Origin: Octopus sinensis
Taxonomy: Eukaryota
Direction: 5' to 3'
Assembly (NCBI RefSeq): GCF_006345805.1
Contig: NC_042997.1
Span: forward strand, 202,492,001 to 202,556,000
DNA: 64,000 bases
The notes under the pieces were generated by a model, which was not told the DNA's origin, did no database searches, and was given only the letters and a program-made list of their open reading frames with translations. Shown one piece after another: positions 8,424 to 58,753 of this stretch; positions within the stretch are counted from its first letter, which is position 1; each line of letters opens with the position of its first letter. Made by a program: the position numbers and the translations under genes.

Positions 8424-8525
8424 GTATGATTAACACAAGATGCAGTTTACATAGGATGCAAATAGTCAGTGGCGACACCTGTGTAAGCAACAAATGATAT
8501 AAACTGCATCTTGTGTTAATCATAC
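8424..8525. repeat. Perfect 26-bp inverted repeat with 50-nt spacer
   Basis: GTATGATTAACACAAGATGCAGTTTA (8424-8449) is the reverse complement of 8500-8525. Confidence 0.9.
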
Positions 8526-10513
8526 ACACACACACCACACATATATATATATATACATATATAGCATCCAGCCATTTGATAGCTTCCTATCAGAAATACA
8601 ATCAAGTCATTGTTTGAAAATAGATTGGACCACATAATGACTTTAACACCCTTTACTGCACGGTGACACCTGCAATACACAGTAACTGTAACCCCTATAC
8701 TTACAGCCCCTTTATTAGATTTGATCCCCTTCATTATAATGTGACTAAACTTTTTACTACATAGACATCCCTTTTTTTCTTTTTTACATTGACTTTAGCC
8801 TTACATAAGGACATTAACCCCTTTATTATAGCGATTTTAACCCCTTTACTACTACAATAATGAATCTTTCAATTATTTCCCAACTACAATAATGAATCTT
8901 TCAATTATTTCCCAACCAAAGGGCACATAATGCCTAACAGCTTGTTGGATGATCATGGTTGGAATCAATCGGCTCAATCAAGGTTGCACAACTATTCGTC
9001 TTTTACTTACCTTACTTTTAACTATTAATTGCTTCTGTTTCTCTCTCTCTCCATAATTTCATTTCAAACCATACTGCTAACATTTTACAAAGAATAATTG
9101 TAATTCCTTCCCTTCGGCTCTTCTTCCTGTTTTTTTTCTTTCTTTTCTCCTTTAAATGATTTTCCAGTCTTCGTGTTTTTATCACAACTTAGTGACAGTA
9201 ATATCAAAAGACCACTGTGGGTTCCAACTTCAGCATAAATAAACATCTTGTTTATATACACGTTTTTGAAAGATTTGTATCATTTTAATTTAAATTTTCT
9301 TCTTTCATTTTATTTTAAATTAAAAACAACAAAAATAAAAACCTTGAATGACGGTGGTGATCCAAACTATCTTGTCGTACACACAAGCACTGAGAAACAA
9401 TAACCGTAACGTTTGTCTTCTTCAGAACATCTCAACTATAAAACAATGAATAATAATAATAATAATAATAACCACCTAAGACTGACTGCTGACATCAGCC
9501 ATGTGATATCTTTACCGTGATAAGGGATATCAGTTCTCTTCACTTTATTTTTTTTCTACTTTTGCACTGCTTGACTCAGAGTATTCTTCCACAGGTGCAT
9601 CTCTCAACAATTCTTCATATTTGTTGCAGTTTTATTTATCCATCCATCAGTAACATTTATTTTTGAAATATGTTTAATGTTCCTCCCACCAACCATCCCA
9701 TTCCCCACCTCTTTTTTTTCTTTTTGTTCCCCCCAAACCAATTCCTTTATGTCCTTACTAGAATAAAAAACCCAAAATTCATTGCTGGACAGCTTCCACC
9801 AGCACTGCCATAGCTCTCCATCAGAAAAATATTTAAAAAGAATACAAAAGACAAACTAAAATGATTTACTTTCCTTTCACATGTCTGATGAAGGCGAGCC
9901 CAAAAGCCTGCCAAAGTTAAATTATTAAAATCACCCTCCCACTTTATTATCATTAATTATTATTAATATCATCACTTATTAATTATTCTTTTTATTTGTC
10001 TGACATGAAAGTAATCCTCTTCATGCAACCTTCTCTAATAGAAGGATATATTTTACAAATTCATTCTTGCTTTAAAATAATAAAGATAACATCTGTGACA
10101 TTCGAGTTGGTCTTTGTTATTGTTTATAATTCTCTTCACTCTTATTTTATACAAATGTAATAATTTTCTATAATTACAAAATTTCAATAGGGACTTAGAA
10201 ATCTTACTAAGTTAATTTTTTTGTAAAGCCTTTATATTTACATAAGCCAGAATCCAATTTGTTTTTAGCTCCTGGTAAACCTGCTGTATAGTGTATCTGG
10301 GACAAAACTGCATGTTTTTTTTTCCCCCCTCTCACCTCTTTATTCAAGACAGAATATGAATGCAATTTGGTTGCTGTTTCTAGCAGATTTGAGACACCAT
10401 GCAGAACCTCTACACTGCATAAAATTTCAATAGAATTTAACTTTGAAATCTTATTTCAAACTTCTAAATTGACTAAATTGAAAATGAATTCCAAAAAAAT
10501 TACAGAACCTTAA

Positions 10514-14723: not shown

Positions 14724-16284
14724 TTAGAAACCATGTACCTAAAACGAAAGGAAACATCACAAGATAATTACAGGAAAGAATTTAAATGACATACATACAA
14801 ATGGTCTTCAATAAAAAATAGAGAAATAACCATAGTTACCTTTAACTGTTCATCTTTGGCAATCTTGCGACACTTCAGAAACTCCTTTATATTGGTTCTC
14901 TGATCTCCTTGCAACTGTATAACTTCCCCGTACTCAGGATGGTCCACTACAGTACCATTACAGGCGAATTCCTGTTAAAAAGCACAACTTCCGTTAACAA
15001 TACAGAAACACTTAAAAATTAATACAACAATCGACAAAAGAAATTACGTCATAAAAGCACAAGAAGAAAAAGACATTCGATGCCAACCAAACTTACTCTC
15101 TTGCAGGCCTTGACTATCTTTTTTAAGTCGAATTGCGTCGAGATTCCTTGCACAGTAGTTAGGGTTTTTCGCCCGTTTCTCTGTTGAATCCGAATATGAA
15201 TTATACTGTCTTGAACGCCAGCACAACCACCAACTTCATCGCTGGCAGTCTTCAGATCTGAAACGACCAAAAATTCCTCAACTCAAAGATTCCACTACAG
15301 CTGCCTGACTGCGCATGCGCCTGCCAGCCCACTTTAGACACAAATGGCAACAGTTTGCTTTGCACAATATATATATTACATTTTAAAACAAATTTGCAAT
15401 CAAGAAATAAACCAATAATGCATAATAAAATCTGTGCTATCCAGTGATCAGATGAACCACTGCAAAAAAAAAAAATGCAGCTGCAGAGAAGTGCTTGGAA
15501 CTGTGTCTATAGCCACTCCTCAAAGACAAAAGATGGCTAGTTAGATATACACTTAATATATATATATTTTTTTTTTTTGCAAAACTGGATTTTTGGGGTT
15601 AAAGGGAAAGAAGAAGGAAAGATGACCAAGAGCAGTTTTAATTTATATGCAACTGACATCACGAGTAAATAAAATTCCTTTACAAAAAATTGTTTTTCAT
15701 TTGTAGATTTCAAATAAAAGATATAATTTATCAAATTGGAAATTAGTCCCATTTTTTTTTTTACCTCATCAGTAGAAAAAGAGGATATTAAGTGTTAAGT
15801 GTAATATAATTCCTATTAGGTTCAAATAAAATTATGGTTAGGAAATGGAATATATTGCAAAAATGAAGAAATTTCTTCATTTTTGCAATATATTTTGCAA
15901 TATACTACATAGAGTAGTAGTGATTCTGTTTCTAAGACCAATATTGATTGCTCAGCTATAGACAATCCACAAAGGAGTGGATGCGAGATTGCAAATTGCA
16001 AATATTTAAAAATGCATAAGCACTGAAAGGTAATAACGAGTGGAAATTTGAACAAAAACGAGTAAAAGATAAATTTTGGATGAAAGATGAAAAAAGATGG
16101 CGGAGGAAGAGAGCAAAGTAGGCCATAAATAAATAAATCAATCTTGAAATCCATGAAGAAAAACGGTTCTTCATCATTGCATTTCGTAATATTCGATTCC
16201 AGAGGTCTAATTTATGGGAATGGTTAGGATTTTGAGTGAAAATATTCGATACTTACCTAAAGAAAGGCTCGGGATACAGGTCAT
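14724..16284 (-). CDS. EIF1: Eukaryotic translation initiation factor 1 (eIF1/SUI1), copy A, 111 aa, 4 exons
   Basis: Exons 16284-16257, 15257-15097, 14971-14840, 14738-14724 (28+161+132+15=336 nt), all GT-AG, phases 1/0/0. Protein MTCIPSLSLDLKTASDEVGGCAGVQDSIIHIRIQQRNGRKTLTTVQGISTQFDLKKIVKACKREFACNGTVVDHPEYGEVIQLQGDQRTNIKEFLKCRKIAKDEQLKVHGF carries the SUI1 signatures. Confidence 0.95.
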
Positions 16285-53812: not shown

Positions 53813-54330
53813 TTAAAGGCAAACATTTTACCAAATTTTCCAGCATTTTAAAAATCGTTACAAAAGCAATTGATCTCAACAGAAATGTGGTAAAAGAATT
53901 GAGGACTATTTTACCAGTGAAAGTTTTGACTTCAATATTGTAGAAGTGTTTCGACACAACAGATCATGTGTGTGGGAGAAGTGGGCACAGTCGTAAAAGA
54001 CATGCCTGTATGGATGGATGGTCGCGATTTTACTGAGCTCACATCAGGTATATGTAATATATAAAAAAAAAGGAAGGCAAGCATTTAAAAATTTTTTTTT
54101 ATTAATTGCATACAAAAAATGTAATAAAGCACTAAAAGACAGCCATTCCCATATAATGGGATAAAATTTGCATAGGTATCATGGACAGTGATTCAGCTGA
54201 ATTCAGTGAAGATCTAATTTAAAAGAAAAAATTAGGATGGACAAATACATCAACGGCCAATAAATACATTGCTACCTGTTTTGAAGGTCCAAGTACATAG
54301 TAGCAATAGGCGCTGGATCAGCAAAGGTAC

Positions 54331-57300
54331 TTAGAAACCATGTACCTAAAACGAAAGGAAACATCACAAGATAATTACAGGAAAGAATTTAAATGACATA
54401 CATACAAATGGTCTTCAATAAAAAATAGAGAAATAACCATAGTTACCTTCAACTGGTCATCTTTGGCAATGTTGTGATTCTTCAGAAAATCCTTTATGTT
54501 GATTCTCTGATCTCCTTGCAACTGTATAACTTCCCCGTACTCAGGATGGTCCACTACAGTACCATTACAGGCGAATTCCTGTTAAAAGCACAACTTCCGT
54601 TAACAATACAGAAACACTTATCAAAATTAATACAACAATTGACAAAAGAAATTACGTCATAAGGGACAAGACACTTGATGCCAACCAAACTTACTTTCTT
54701 GCAGGCCTTGACTATCTTTTTTAAGTCAAATTGCGTCGAGATTCCTTGCACAGTAGTTAGGGTTTTTCGCCCGTTTCTCTGTTGAATCCGAATATGAATT
54801 ATACTGTCTTGAGCGCCAGAACCACCACCAACATCGTCGCTGGCAGGCTTCAGATCTGAAACAATAAAAAATTCCTTAAATCAGATTTCAGTAACAGCTA
54901 CCTGACTGCGCACGCACCTGTCAGCCTACTCTAATTAGACACAAATGACAACAGTTTGCTTTACATTCACTTTAAAATGTAAGTTTTCAATCAGAAATAA
55001 ACCAAAAATGCAGGGTGTCCACAAATTACCTTTACAATTTGAAAAATTTAGAAAAAAATGAAAGTTCTTGTGCAAAACTTTGTGAATTGTGGATGGTGGT
55101 AAACTTAACTGTCTACTTGCAGTACGAATAGACTTAGTTGGAGTACGATGAAATGCTGCTCGAATTCGCTCAACATCTTCTACAGATGTTCTTGGTCGAC
55201 CAGCCCCTGATCTGTGTAGTACGCTCCCTGTTTCCATAAACTTTTTATACCAGGCACGGATGCTTACACGACTCGGTGGTTCATTCCCATACATTGCCCG
55301 GTACTTCCGCTGGACCTGAGTGTCTGATTTGGTCTCTATGAACCAAGATACACATTGTGCTTTCTCTTGTGGTGTTGTCATTTTCATTAAAAGTCAGGGA
55401 TAATAATATACACCTTCAAAGACAAATGAAAGCGATCCAATTATTAAAACAAAGTACATCAATTAACACTTTCATAATATTTAACATGTAATGAAGTTGA
55501 TTGATAGATCTCAACTTTACTAGATACAAGATAATTTATGGACACGCTGCATAAAATAAAATTTTCTATACTACTTACTGACTAGATAAATAACTGAGAA
55601 TGTACATTATTTATAAAGTCTAATCCAATATCGTCACTCTTAGACAAAGGTGCCTAAGAACAGTAAAAGCTATAAAAATAAGGATGATGGGTAGTTAGAT
55701 GTAGACTTAAATATATAAGTATGCCACATATATAAAAGTTCTGACCGTATTTAAAGGCTCAATTAAACAATACGAAAAAAAATTTGGTTTATTTAATTGC
55801 CAAGTCTTCCCTGTGACCTCATTTCACCTGTCAATGAGCTATTTAATAACACGTTTATAAGATTCTTTAGGTTTAGAAGTGAAAAGGGAAATTGACTCAT
55901 TTTCGACTTCAAGTCTTAATCCACTCAAATGATTTTAACTTCTAAAGAGGTATTAATCTGTAGGTGCGGGATCCAGTGAATATGGTGGGAGATGCATAAT
56001 TTTCTATGAGCTCTTAGGTCTTTTCTGTAGGGCGAGGTCAAGTGTTATCATGATGAAGCATGACTCCTTTTCTGTCTGCTAATGATGGATGCTTTTGTTG
56101 CAAAGCTACTTTCAAGCGTGTTAGCAGTATACATCGGCTGTTCTTCTTGTTAGATTATCGTTTGAAAGCCATGATTAATTATTTCACGCATATCCCACCA
56201 GACACCCAGGAAAACCTTCCTTGGAAGCAGATCACTTCAGGGCTGTTGAACTGGATCTTCACCACCACTGTGCCACTGACGTTTTTGCTTTACATTATGG
56301 TAAAGTATCCACTTTTCTTTTTCAGTAATGACTTTTCAAAAAAGGCATTTGCCACTCACGAGATCCATTTTCTAACCTTTGACACTTTTACAAAGCCTTT
56401 TCAATTAACGGTGAATGGTGGTATGGCTCACGTTGAAGTCTGTGCTTAGTTCCTGAACTGTAACAATCAGATATGTTTCCAACAGTAGGTTCCAACGCAT
56501 CAAGATCCAACCCTCTTGGGCGCCCTTTCTTGGTTCATTCTGAAGGCTGTAGTCCAGGTTTCTGTATCATGAAAAACATCTGCTGCACGTTATTTGAATC
56601 ACTACGCCATCACCATAAGTGTTTGGGAATGATTTTGCTGCTACACTTGCATTATTATTGCCTGTCTTTCGTTTTCACCCGCAGAAACGTCAAACTCGGG
56701 CATATGGGATCATATGATTGTTCGTGAATTTCCGTAATTTTTTAATTTACTATTCGCGCTCCGTTTTCAGGTCAATGTATTTGTAGTCAGTCACATGCAC
56801 ACATACAAATGTATTTTTGTATGTACATGTATATACACACACACACCAATATGATAGAGTCTGACATATCAAGACATTTCTGGGGTAGAAAACGGAAGAT
56901 GGCTGCATTATTCCCTTTTTGAAATTCATAAAGCGACGATTAAGTGCTTTACTCCGAGTGAACATGGGACCAATATAAGTTCGATTATGGTAAAATTGAC
57001 AAAATCGGCAAAATTTTTCGATATGGAAATTGATATAATTTCGCCGTATTTCAAATAGAGTCGAAAATCCTTATAATTTACCAAATCGAAAAGCAGTCAA
57101 TTTGTTCTCATCGGTTAAAAAAAATAATATAAAAAGGTTATAAATGTAATGTGATTTATATTATTACATATAACAGTCGGAGTTTAATATAGGGAAGGCG
57201 GTTAGACACATAGGGGAATATTGTAAAAGTGAGTAAAGTAAAATGAGGAAATACCGATTATGGTGAATAGTACATTTAATCACTAAATAGAACAATATTG

Positions 57301-57831
57301 AATATATGCTGATAACAACCAACTAATGGATTTCAGACTAGAAATATTTAAAAATGCAGAGGCACTGAAAAGAAGGAATAAAGAGGCAAAAATAAGGAAT
57401 AAAACGAGGAAGTGAAATGGGTTTTTGGCGGAAGTTGTGACCGGTTTTTCATGGCGTGATCCAGAAGTTAGGAAATTTTTGAAAACTTTTCTTTTCATAA
57501 TCGTATGAAATCCCGTGTGGAGAACACAAATTCGCTAATTTTTTTCTGAAAATACTAAACATGATCGAAAGTTGTGAGAAGTTATAAACTAATTTCGCCG
57601 GATTAAAAAAAAGAATTTTTTTTTTTTTTGTTGAAGATGAAAAAACATGGCGAAGAAAGCAAAGAAAAGCCATGAAGAAATGAATCATCGCGAAATCCAT
57701 GAAGAAAACGGTTCTTCATTTTTATATTTCGTAATATTTGATTTTAGCGGCCTATTTTTATAGGAATGGTTAGGATTTTTAAGTGAAAATATTCGCTACT
57801 TACCTAAAGAAAGGCTCGGGATACTGGTCAT
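54331..57831 (-). CDS. EIF1: Eukaryotic translation initiation factor 1 (eIF1/SUI1), copy B, 111 aa, 4 exons
   Basis: Exons 57831-57804, 54855-54695, 54578-54447, 54345-54331, all GT-AG, same sizes as copy A. Protein MTSIPSLSLDLKPASDDVGGGSGAQDSIIHIRIQQRNGRKTLTTVQGISTQFDLKKIVKACKKEFACNGTVVDHPEYGEVIQLQGDQRINIKDFLKNHNIAKDDQLKVHGF. Confidence 0.95.
55011..55549 (-). mobile_element. Internally deleted Tc1/mariner-superfamily element (DUF4817-type HTH) in eIF1-B intron 1
   Basis: TIRs CAGGGTGTCCACAAATTACCTT and (rc) CAGCGTGTCCATAAATTATCTT. ORF from 55387: MTTPQEKAQCVSWFIETKS...SIRAWYKKFMETGSVL..GAGRPRTS...KSIRTASRQL..P.STIHKVLHK; catalytic domain deleted. Confidence 0.9.
55850..56760 (-). mobile_element. 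Decayed mariner transposase remnant in eIF1-B intron 1
   Basis: Minus-strand pieces EPRKGRPR, ITEKEKWILYHNVKQKRQW, PRKVFLGVWWDM, VMLHHDN, PPYSLDPAPTD-YLFRS; ends not resolved. Confidence 0.8.
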
Positions 57832-58132
57832 ACAGCAGGTAGTGTTATTCCACCAAGAGATATCAAACCCCGACGGTGAGGGGTGGAAAAGAGTTTTTTC
57901 TGGAGTTAAAAACGGGAACGAAGACGAACCGATACACACAGAGGAAGACCTTGTGTGTATGTATCAACTTGTTGATGGGTTTTGAGAAGAAAAACAGAAG
58001 AATTCAAAAGAAAAAATAGAGTTGGGGGGAAAAACTGAAAATTAAGTTAAGAAGATAAGAAACAAACAAGCGCGAAGACCAGACTTAACATTTCAGCCAA
58101 TCAGAACCAAGTCTCACTAAAAGTTCGAGAAT

Positions 58133-58753
58133 AACGCAGAGAGTTTAGTAACCAATCCTTTTTTTTTTAATTAACTATATTTATTTTTTCATCTCACCGA
58201 AATGTAATTTCAACGAATTAAATTTTATTTTGAACATGAAATTTTATATTATTTTTGCTATTATTAATTTTTCTCATAACAAAGCTTAACGCAGAGAGTT
58301 TAGTAACCAATCCTTTTTTTTTTTTATTAACTATATTTATTTTTTTCATCTCACCGAAATGTAATTTCAATGAATTAAATTTTATTTTGAACATGAAATT
58401 TTATTTTATTTTTGCTATTATTAATTTTTCTCATAACAAAGCTTAACGCAGAGAGTTTAGTAACAAATCCTTTTTTTTTTAATTAACTATATTTATTTTT
58501 TCATCTCACCGAAATGTAATTTCAACGAATTAAATTTTATTTTGAACATGAAATTTTATATTATTTTTGCTATTATTAATTTTTCTCATAACAAAGCTTA
58601 ACGCAGAGAGTTTAGTAACAAATCCTTTTTTTTTAATTAACTATATTTATTTTTTTCATCTCACCGAAATGTAATTTCAATAAATTAAATTTTATTTTGA
58701 ACATGAAATTTTATATTATTTTTGCTATAATTAATTTTTCTCATAACAAAGCT
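58133..58753. repeat. Tandem array of four ~155-bp units upstream of eIF1-B
   Basis: Units start 58133, 58288, 58445, 58600 (AACGCAGAGAGTTTAGTAAC...CTCATAACAAAGCT). A single homologous unit is at ~16668-16812 in copy A. Confidence 0.95.

Follow-up and report, generated by a model that had tools for sequence, protein, structure and literature searches.

A transposon-borne helix-turn-helix reading frame in an intron of octopus eIF1-B as a candidate transposase-eIF1 fusion

The translation initiation factor eIF1, which sets start-codon stringency, is encoded by two tandem paralogs (A and B, both on the minus strand) in a 64,000-nucleotide stretch of Octopus sinensis chromosome 1 (202.49-202.56 Mb of a 2.72-Gb genome), referred to below as the window. 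Intron 1 of paralog B (eIF1-B) holds a short relic of a DUF4817-family DNA transposon, in which an open reading frame (ORF) for the helix-turn-helix (HTH) DNA-binding domain (DBD) of the transposase has stayed open in three octopus species. Our comparisons of these sequences suggest that the element probably has some selected function. As the best explanation we propose, tentatively, that the frame is spliced in phase to the downstream exons of eIF1-B, which would yield an HTH-SUI1 fusion protein and make the locus a candidate new member of the known host-transposase fusion or domesticated DBD kind.

Results

An internally deleted transposon retains a complete DNA-binding domain

The element (Table 1) ends in CAGCGTGTCCATAAATTATC... 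and ...GGTAATTTGTGGACACCCTG, compared with CAGGGTGTCCATAAATTATC... and ...GGTAATTTATGGACACCCTG in the family consensus, so that its terminal inverted repeats (TIRs) match those of the family. Full-length family copies in O. sinensis measure approximately 1.2-1.3 kb, with the ends TA/CAGGGTGTCCATAAATTATC... and ...ATTGTAAAGGTAATTTATGGACACCCTG/TA (a slash marks an element boundary or a splice position throughout), and the full-length relatives encode 345-aa transposases (DUF4817 plus DDE_3) that are 74-77% identical to residues 1-110 of the intronic ORF and begin at its second methionine (MTTPQEK..., ATG 55381). Homology to the transposase stops at residue 110 of 345, with the DDE catalytic domain wholly lost, and the element is a non-autonomous deletion derivative. 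A first-pass annotation of the window, made from the letters alone, had placed the element in sense orientation within the intron and had described its ORF as open across the whole HTH region from ATG 55387, in contrast to the stop-ridden mariners of the window; both descriptions hold, as the element (55549-55011) lies inside intron 1 (57803-54856) and numerous stops and frameshifts interrupt the mariner remnant that shares this intron. This remnant is of the Transposase_1-like type (window approximately 55900-56560, minus strand) and shares its orientation with the HTH element.

Beginning at ATG 55387 on the minus strand, the ORF encodes 150 aa before a stop at 54935, and an in-frame TGA bounds it upstream. 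Its N-terminal part matches the DUF4817 HTH in Pfam (PF16087, E=1.5e-9, above the curated cut-off), with weaker matches to HTH_32 and HTH_48. An AlphaFold2 model (26 sequences, mean pLDDT 70.7) contains two three-helix bundles (residues 6-53 and 69-108) connected by a GRPR-containing linker and followed by a disordered tail; Foldseek returned the DNA-binding domains of SETMAR (7S03) and Mos1 (3HOT, 5HOO) as best matches, and SETMAR was the sole match to the ORF in a sequence search of the PDB. As modelled, the HTH DNA-binding domain is structurally complete. Of the 119 residues encoded up to a donor-like site in the 3' TIR, the final 11 (FHFFLNFSNCK) derive from the deletion junction and subterminal 3' sequence.

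Directly outside the element, O. sinensis and O. vulgaris have TG (55551-55550) and CA (55010-55009), and O. bimaculoides has TG...TA, as does a fragment copied to chromosome 7; the corresponding empty site in paralog A reads TATGCATT. These flanks are compatible with a decayed TA target-site duplication, and TATGCATT is a mismatch to the canonical TAC(A/T)GTA type of excision footprint.

The insertion is shared by three Octopus species

Orthologous loci in O. vulgaris (L032) and O. bimaculoides (L031), found via their eIF1-B proteins, show more than 20 kb of collinearity with the window. The element is present at the orthologous position in both, with 99.7% and 95.8% identity, respectively, over 761 bp, and the ORF, start codons, donor and acceptor are intact in all three species. 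Paralog A is without the element: the homology between A and B (87.8%) ends at the element 3' end, and the B flanks, when joined, align across the A site. Judged from these alignments, the insertion dates between the A/B tandem duplication and the split of O. bimaculoides from O. sinensis and O. vulgaris, which is placed at approximately 34 million years ago, the sinensis/vulgaris split being placed at 2.5 million years (10.1101/2023.05.16.540928). The eIF1 gene of Argonauta hians spans 1.2 kb and contains no HTH, consistent with insertion after the duplication, but adds no power.

Elsewhere in the genome, the nearest copies are only approximately 79% identical to the element in DNA and at most 71% in protein, and all 12 of the same-family copies that were aligned carry stops and/or indels and lie 11-26% from the consensus. 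The first-pass annotation had considered that the ORF might be open merely because the insertion is young, with near-identical copies in the genome and none in sister species; the divergence of the nearest copies, together with the orthologous elements in two species, instead indicates an old insertion.

The HTH frame is conserved up to the donor-like site

As a neutral reference, we used 14.4 kb of aligned non-coding sequence between O. sinensis and O. bimaculoides, in which substitutions amount to 7.3% and indel events to 1.4 per 100 bp. The 357 nt of the ORF up to the donor-like site show 11 substitutions, compared with 26.2 expected after adjustment for composition (P=0.0007), and no indels, compared with approximately 5 expected (P=0.006). 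A sliding-window scan found the element to be, jointly with the eIF1-B 3' untranslated region, the least diverged stretch of approximately 16 kb, and the only indel-free windows among 313 were those overlapping the ORF. GC content or sequence complexity was rejected as the cause of the low divergence, as GC-matched windows show 5-13% divergence and 1-12 indels. The mariner remnant, serving as an internal neutral control, has diverged from its O. bimaculoides counterpart by 8-10%, with 3-4 indels.

The substitutions within the frame are distributed as expected for a coding sequence under purifying selection. Five nonsynonymous and six synonymous changes separate O. sinensis from O. bimaculoides (pN 0.018, pS 0.076, NG86; Fisher one-sided p=0.018), and the agreement of pS with the neutral 7.3% indicates that synonymous sites evolve at the neutral rate. 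O. vulgaris differs at a single ORF site, by a synonymous change, and third codon positions account for 8 of the 12 changes. The first-pass annotation had proposed, as a check, dN/dS of the HTH against other family copies and orthologous insertions; for the orthologous insertion, a pairwise GY94-type model of O. sinensis against O. bimaculoides gives an omega of 0.22 (likelihood-ratio test, p=0.017). A comparison with the family consensus (approximately 13 nonsynonymous to 13 synonymous changes; the eIF1-B copy lies 8.0% from the consensus, the others 11-26%) was dropped as evidence on the time after insertion, since these differences may predate the insertion and reflect evolution of the active master lineage.

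Downstream of the donor-like site, this pattern ends. Bins of 50 bp contain 0-3 differences each within the element and 3, 4 and 5 right after 55030, divergence is 6-10% right after the donor with a local maximum in the 150 bp past 55030, and the read-through tail of the ORF (55030-54938) has an omega of 1.05 with five nonsynonymous and two synonymous changes, as expected under neutrality. On these alignments, selective constraint stops at the proposed donor.

A neutral fossil, in which chance or a locally low mutation rate has left the ORF intact and little diverged and the donor and frame match are coincidental, has to be weighed against these observations. The region 54000-56200 is indeed less diverged overall (5.2%) than the 16-kb average (7.3%), and at this local rate 18.5 substitutions would be expected in the ORF, so that the deficit is significant only at P=0.044; the test of nonsynonymous against synonymous changes involves 11 changes, with P about 0.02-0.045. 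Furthermore, thousands of DUF4817-type HTH remnants exist in the genome, a few others of which are also open, the locus was ascertained because its ORF is open, and annotation does not support its expression. Partly independent signals nevertheless agree, namely the low omega, synonymous sites at the neutral rate and zero indels in both lineages; the O. bimaculoides ORF is intact, which is independent of ascertainment; and neutral divergence returns sharply after 55030 in an intron whose mariner has decayed. Taken jointly, O. bimaculoides intactness, the rate deficit and the skew towards synonymous changes render pure neutrality improbable, with a conservative joint probability of the order of 1e-4, even allowing for the ORF having been noticed because it is open in O. 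sinensis. We consider a neutral fossil unlikely, and some selected function of the element probable.

Sequence outside the frame is also conserved, as the 5' TIR and leader differ from O. bimaculoides by 3 substitutions and one 2-bp indel in 164 bp. With 1.9% divergence, this non-coding part is at least as conserved as the ORF, which would suit a role at the RNA or DNA level, for example as an intronic enhancer, an alternative promoter or a poison cassette exon tuning eIF1-B output. A good acceptor-like site (ttttattttatgcag/CG) and the donor at 55030 bracket the element, both conserved, and would delimit a 517-nt cassette exon (55546-55030), whose inclusion would create the junction 57804^55546 (CTTTCTTTAG^CGTGTCCATAAA) and end the eIF1 frame after 12 codons (MTSIPSLSLACP). 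However, the third-position bias and the neutral rate of synonymous sites are signs of coding rather than sequence constraint, and the cassette exon is absent from annotations, leaving a purely RNA- or DNA-level role improbable in our estimation. The balance of these data inclines slightly towards a selected function that acts at the protein level.

The conserved frame may be spliced to the SUI1-encoding exons of eIF1-B

The proposed fusion would have arisen when a non-autonomous DUF4817-family deletion derivative inserted, in sense orientation, into eIF1-B intron 1; the frame of its HTH domain would then have been kept by purifying selection at the protein level, with the catalytic domain lost, and the element would serve as an alternative first coding exon. 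Transcription would begin in the conserved transposon 5' end, or a transcript would splice into it; entry via the ttttattttatgcag/CG acceptor-like site would leave the weak-context eIF1 AUG to open only a 12-codon upstream ORF (MTSIPSLSLACP). Translation would begin at the transposase AUG 55381 or 55387, and the 3' TIR donor AAG/GTAATT (55030) would be spliced to the exon 2 acceptor (54855). The predicted product of 219 or 221 aa would comprise the transposase DBD, a short disordered linker and the eIF1-B SUI1 fold without its 9-residue native N-terminus.

Several features of the locus are consistent with this model, and the splicing geometry claimed in the first-pass annotation was reproduced in silico. 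The phase-1 donor-like site in the 3' TIR, with its exon end at 55030, is seen both in the sequence and in the family 3' TIR consensus, so it would already have been there on insertion, with no new mutation required, and it is similar in quality to the natural exon 3 donor of eIF1-B (AAG/GTAACT). The next acceptor after it is that of eIF1-B exon 2, 174 nt away and in frame. Joining 55030^54855 removes the 174 nt from 55029 to 54856 and yields an uninterrupted frame of 119+102 = 221 aa ending in ...VHGF, and the same joined frame is open in O. vulgaris and O. bimaculoides. At the junction, G+AT encodes Asp, the same codon that is formed after native exon 1 (...TTA G/). Over its eIF1 part, the frame agrees in full (100% identity) with the record 'eukaryotic translation initiation factor 1 isoform X4 [Octopus sinensis]', and the C-terminal part matches the SUI1 domain in Pfam (PF01253, E=1.8e-28). 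Also as claimed, the second transposase AUG (aaaATGa, A at -3) has a stronger context than the eIF1 AUG (tgtATGa, T at -3). The fusion junction would read TCAAATTGTAAAG^ATCTGAAGCC, as opposed to CTTTCTTTAG^ATCTGAAGCC at the canonical junction 57804^54855, and the peptide DLKPASDDVGGGSGAQDSIIHIR would be preceded by K in the predicted fusion (...SNCK/D), compared with ...SLSL in the canonical protein.

Inspection of the sequence between the donor and exon 2 (55029-54856) revealed no AATAAA or ATTAAA; with no polyadenylation signal there, a transcript using the ORF must run on into the eIF1-B exons. All downstream exons available to it belong to eIF1, and the combination of constraint ending at the donor, a neutral tail, the missing polyadenylation signal and an in-frame acceptor makes an HTH-SUI1 chimera the simplest predicted product.

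The same selection evidence would apply equally to a stand-alone DBD-only protein of approximately 150 aa (stop at 54935, with an unconstrained tail) translated from a transcript nested in the intron, which could regulate or repress via the family TIRs or be a new DNA-binding factor. Its domain would be complete, and a single-exon, repeat-like intronic ORF is typical of what annotation pipelines miss, which would explain its absence from annotations. DBD-only truncated transposases are known regulators, as in the case of the P-element KP repressor, a truncated transposase that retains only its DBD. Yet the mRNA would meet no polyadenylation signal before exon 2 and would enter the eIF1-B exons with later junctions lying far downstream of its stop, the tail of 31 aa is neutral (omega 1.05), a conserved donor stands exactly where constraint ends, and the family copies that such a protein might regulate are all dead. 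We regard a stand-alone protein as unlikely, about on a par with a neutral fossil.

The background of the gene itself bears on the fusion model. The paralog A protein (P0223) shows no differences among the three Octopus species, compared with 7 residues that differ between O. sinensis and O. bimaculoides in the paralog B protein; the omega of the eIF1-B coding sequence, from the same pairwise model and species pair, is 0.50 and not significantly below 1 (p=0.23). Paralog B is thus a rapidly changing copy of a factor that is usually very conserved, in which a new exon would be less likely to be harmful. Overall, the locus may represent, though we advance this with reserve, a case in which, by means of a TIR-borne splice donor, a domesticated mariner-type DBD takes the place of the N-terminal tail in a rapidly evolving eIF1 paralog.

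Annotations and protein databases do not contain the fusion

A number of points weigh against the spliced fusion. It is annotated neither in two RefSeq Octopus annotations nor in the Iso-Seq-informed O. vulgaris annotation; in O. bimaculoides and O. vulgaris the longest annotated eIF1-B product measures 111 aa, which is also the length of every O. sinensis RefSeq isoform found. Searching a database of 5.8 billion proteins with the 221-aa query returned no protein with both HTH and SUI1, and an exact look-up of the 150-aa ORF in the same database found no match. As RefSeq annotates chimeras of this kind when they are supported (P0161, described below), their absence here is moderate evidence against strong and broad expression, but not against restricted expression. 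Three upstream AUGs are present in the transposon leader, a frame match has a prior of 1 in 3 with the donor simply being a family TIR feature, and the codon tests rest on 11-12 substitutions only. In addition, no function is evident for a DBD tethered to a ribosome-bound, 40S-binding fidelity factor.

The top two matches of the 221-aa query (P0121, P0122) were rejected as tandem-SUI1 mis-annotations. The sole Logan RNA contig reached (L034), from another cephalopod, is an eIF1 transcript that retains intron 1 and has no HTH; Octopus eIF1 clusters hold no Logan members.

Discussion

New genes are documented to arise when transposases are captured via splice sites that the transposon brings along, the captured domain showing dN/dS<1 (10.1101/2020.05.07.082677). 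The octopus locus resembles the host-transposase fusions of that study (Cosby et al., 10.1101/2020.05.07.082677), KRABINER among them, in having an intronic DNA transposon in sense orientation with its DBD retained, a splice site from the transposon consensus, a transposase part with dN/dS<1 at p<0.05 and an unfused host isoform that persists. In those fusions, however, the host exons lie upstream and the transposon provides the acceptor and the C-terminal part, whereas in octopus a promoter or leader, the start codon, the N-terminal domain and a donor within the TIR would come from the transposon, in a transcript that is predicted only; moreover, the partner is a translation factor rather than a chromatin or transcription domain, and the host is a cephalopod rather than a tetrapod.

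SETMAR, in which a SET domain is joined to the Hsmar1 mariner transposase, likewise has a mariner-type bipartite HTH under selection in a chimeric host gene, and its DBD (7S03) is the best match to the ORF in both sequence and fold, at an identity of only approximately 18%. SETMAR differs in keeping the whole transposase, at the C-terminus, while the octopus ORF encodes the DBD alone, at the N-terminus. A further related case is isoform X2 of Myxine glutinosa TXNDC17 (P0161, a RefSeq predicted model), whose N-terminus is an HTH of the same family (65% identity) that breaks off a few residues past the same last helix (VLHxRLRLY) and continues into host thioredoxin-domain exons. In this hagfish model the host partner is a different one and the donor falls within the transposase ORF, not in the TIR; it is a possible independent case of N-terminal DBD capture. 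Repressors of the KP type share with the octopus element an internal deletion that removes the catalytic domain while the DNA-binding N-terminus stays, but they act on active elements of their own family, whereas the octopus family copies examined are all dead and the frame is constrained all the same.

The comparative data, with a frame intact in two lineages for at least 34 million years, a low omega and constraint that ends at a splice donor, are good evidence for exaptation of this transposon relic in Octopus. Were the fusion genuine, cephalopods would gain their first reported host-transposase fusion, and a translation-initiation fidelity factor would for the first time be the partner in one, with capture at the N-terminal side (promoter, AUG and DBD) instead of the C-terminal side. 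In vertebrates, captured transposases are known to have given rise to new transcription factors; there is little documentation of cases outside vertebrates, of transposons that supply the 5' end of a gene or of partners that do not belong to chromatin biology. The octopus fusion would connect the SUI1 fold to a module that binds DNA sequence-specifically and has thousands of relic sites in the genome, and would do so in a lineage known for genomes rich in transposons and for unusual RNA biology. Should the fusion not be real, the locus would still represent a clean, testable case of a conserved DBD-only transposase relic.

Features of the locus and minor observations

The coordinates of the features discussed here are collected in Table 1. 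The eIF1-B gene has four coding exons, and the coding part of exon 1 is identical to that of O. bimaculoides at 28 of 28 positions.

Table 1. Coordinates of the eIF1 paralogs and the intronic transposon element, as positions in the window (TIR, terminal inverted repeat; UTR, untranslated region).
Feature	Position	Strand	Details
eIF1 paralog A	exon 1 ATG at 16284; exon 2 from 15258	minus	
eIF1-B exon 1, coding part	57804..57831	minus	ATG 57831; MTSIPSLSL + G; donor TAG/GTAAGT
eIF1-B intron 1	54856..57803	minus	2948 nt; contains the HTH element and a decayed mariner
eIF1-B exon 2	54695..54855	minus	phase 1 start; acceptor ttattgtttcag/AT
eIF1-B exon 3	54447..54578	minus	
eIF1-B exon 4, coding part	54331..54345	minus	VHGF + TAA
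Internally deleted Tc1/mariner-type (DUF4817 family) element	55011..55549	minus	539 bp; sense orientation in eIF1-B intron 1
5' TIR and transposon leader	55388..55549	minus	candidate promoter/5' UTR; upstream ATGs 55487, 55475, 55459; in-frame TGA 55396
Acceptor-like AG	55547..55548	minus	ttttattttatgcag/CG, from T-rich flank and 5' TIR; same in three species
HTH part of the ORF	55031..55387	minus	119 codons; complete bipartite HTH and 11-aa tail; canonical start is the second ATG, 55381
Internal deletion junction	55061..55066	minus	approximately 750 bp gone at approximately 55063, just past the last DBD helix (...VLHKN/F)
Donor-like site	55028..55033	minus	AAG/GTAATT; exon end 55030, GT 55029-55028; phase 1; same in three species
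Putative fusion-transcript intron	54856..55029	minus	174 nt

In the RefSeq 'isoform X2' of O. sinensis and in O. vulgaris CAI9716644 (P0003), exon 1 of paralog B (MTS...; 57804-57831) is joined to exons 2-4 of paralog A (15258-14837), which indicates that the tandem paralogs are annotated as one transcription unit with read-through splicing over approximately 40 kb. The O. vulgaris locus additionally has an annotated 130-aa product, whose range begins at the B ATG and extends beyond the end of the locus.

Some 300 bp upstream of the eIF1-B ATG lies a tandem array of a 155-bp unit (4.0 copies, 96% match, window 58132-58753). In the O. vulgaris ortholog, the number of units is apparently about twice as high (L032 approximately 8473-9701), and paralog A has approximately 1.3 units.

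The chromosome 7 fragment noted above is a 133-bp copy of intron 1 sequence (window 54897-55029; chr7:29165795-29165927, L017 1463-1595) with 95.5% identity. Its first base is exactly the G of the putative GT donor (55029), its last lies 42 nt short of the exon 2 acceptor, and the terminal 19 bp of the 3' TIR are part of it; as it keeps the O. bimaculoides or O. vulgaris state at four sites, the copy is old. A lariat-derived origin of this insert would be purely speculative.

An Rfam scan for structured RNA in the intron returned nothing above threshold; weak mir-297- and mir-466-like matches at window 56774-56847, on both strands, reached 33 bits against a gathering score of 90 and are most likely due to chance. 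Among the database matches, an eIF1-like protein labelled Bacillus amyloliquefaciens (P0002) and a DUF4817 transposase labelled Salmonella enterica (P0127) come from contigs of approximately 0.5-1.5 kb and almost certainly represent animal DNA contaminating bacterial assemblies.

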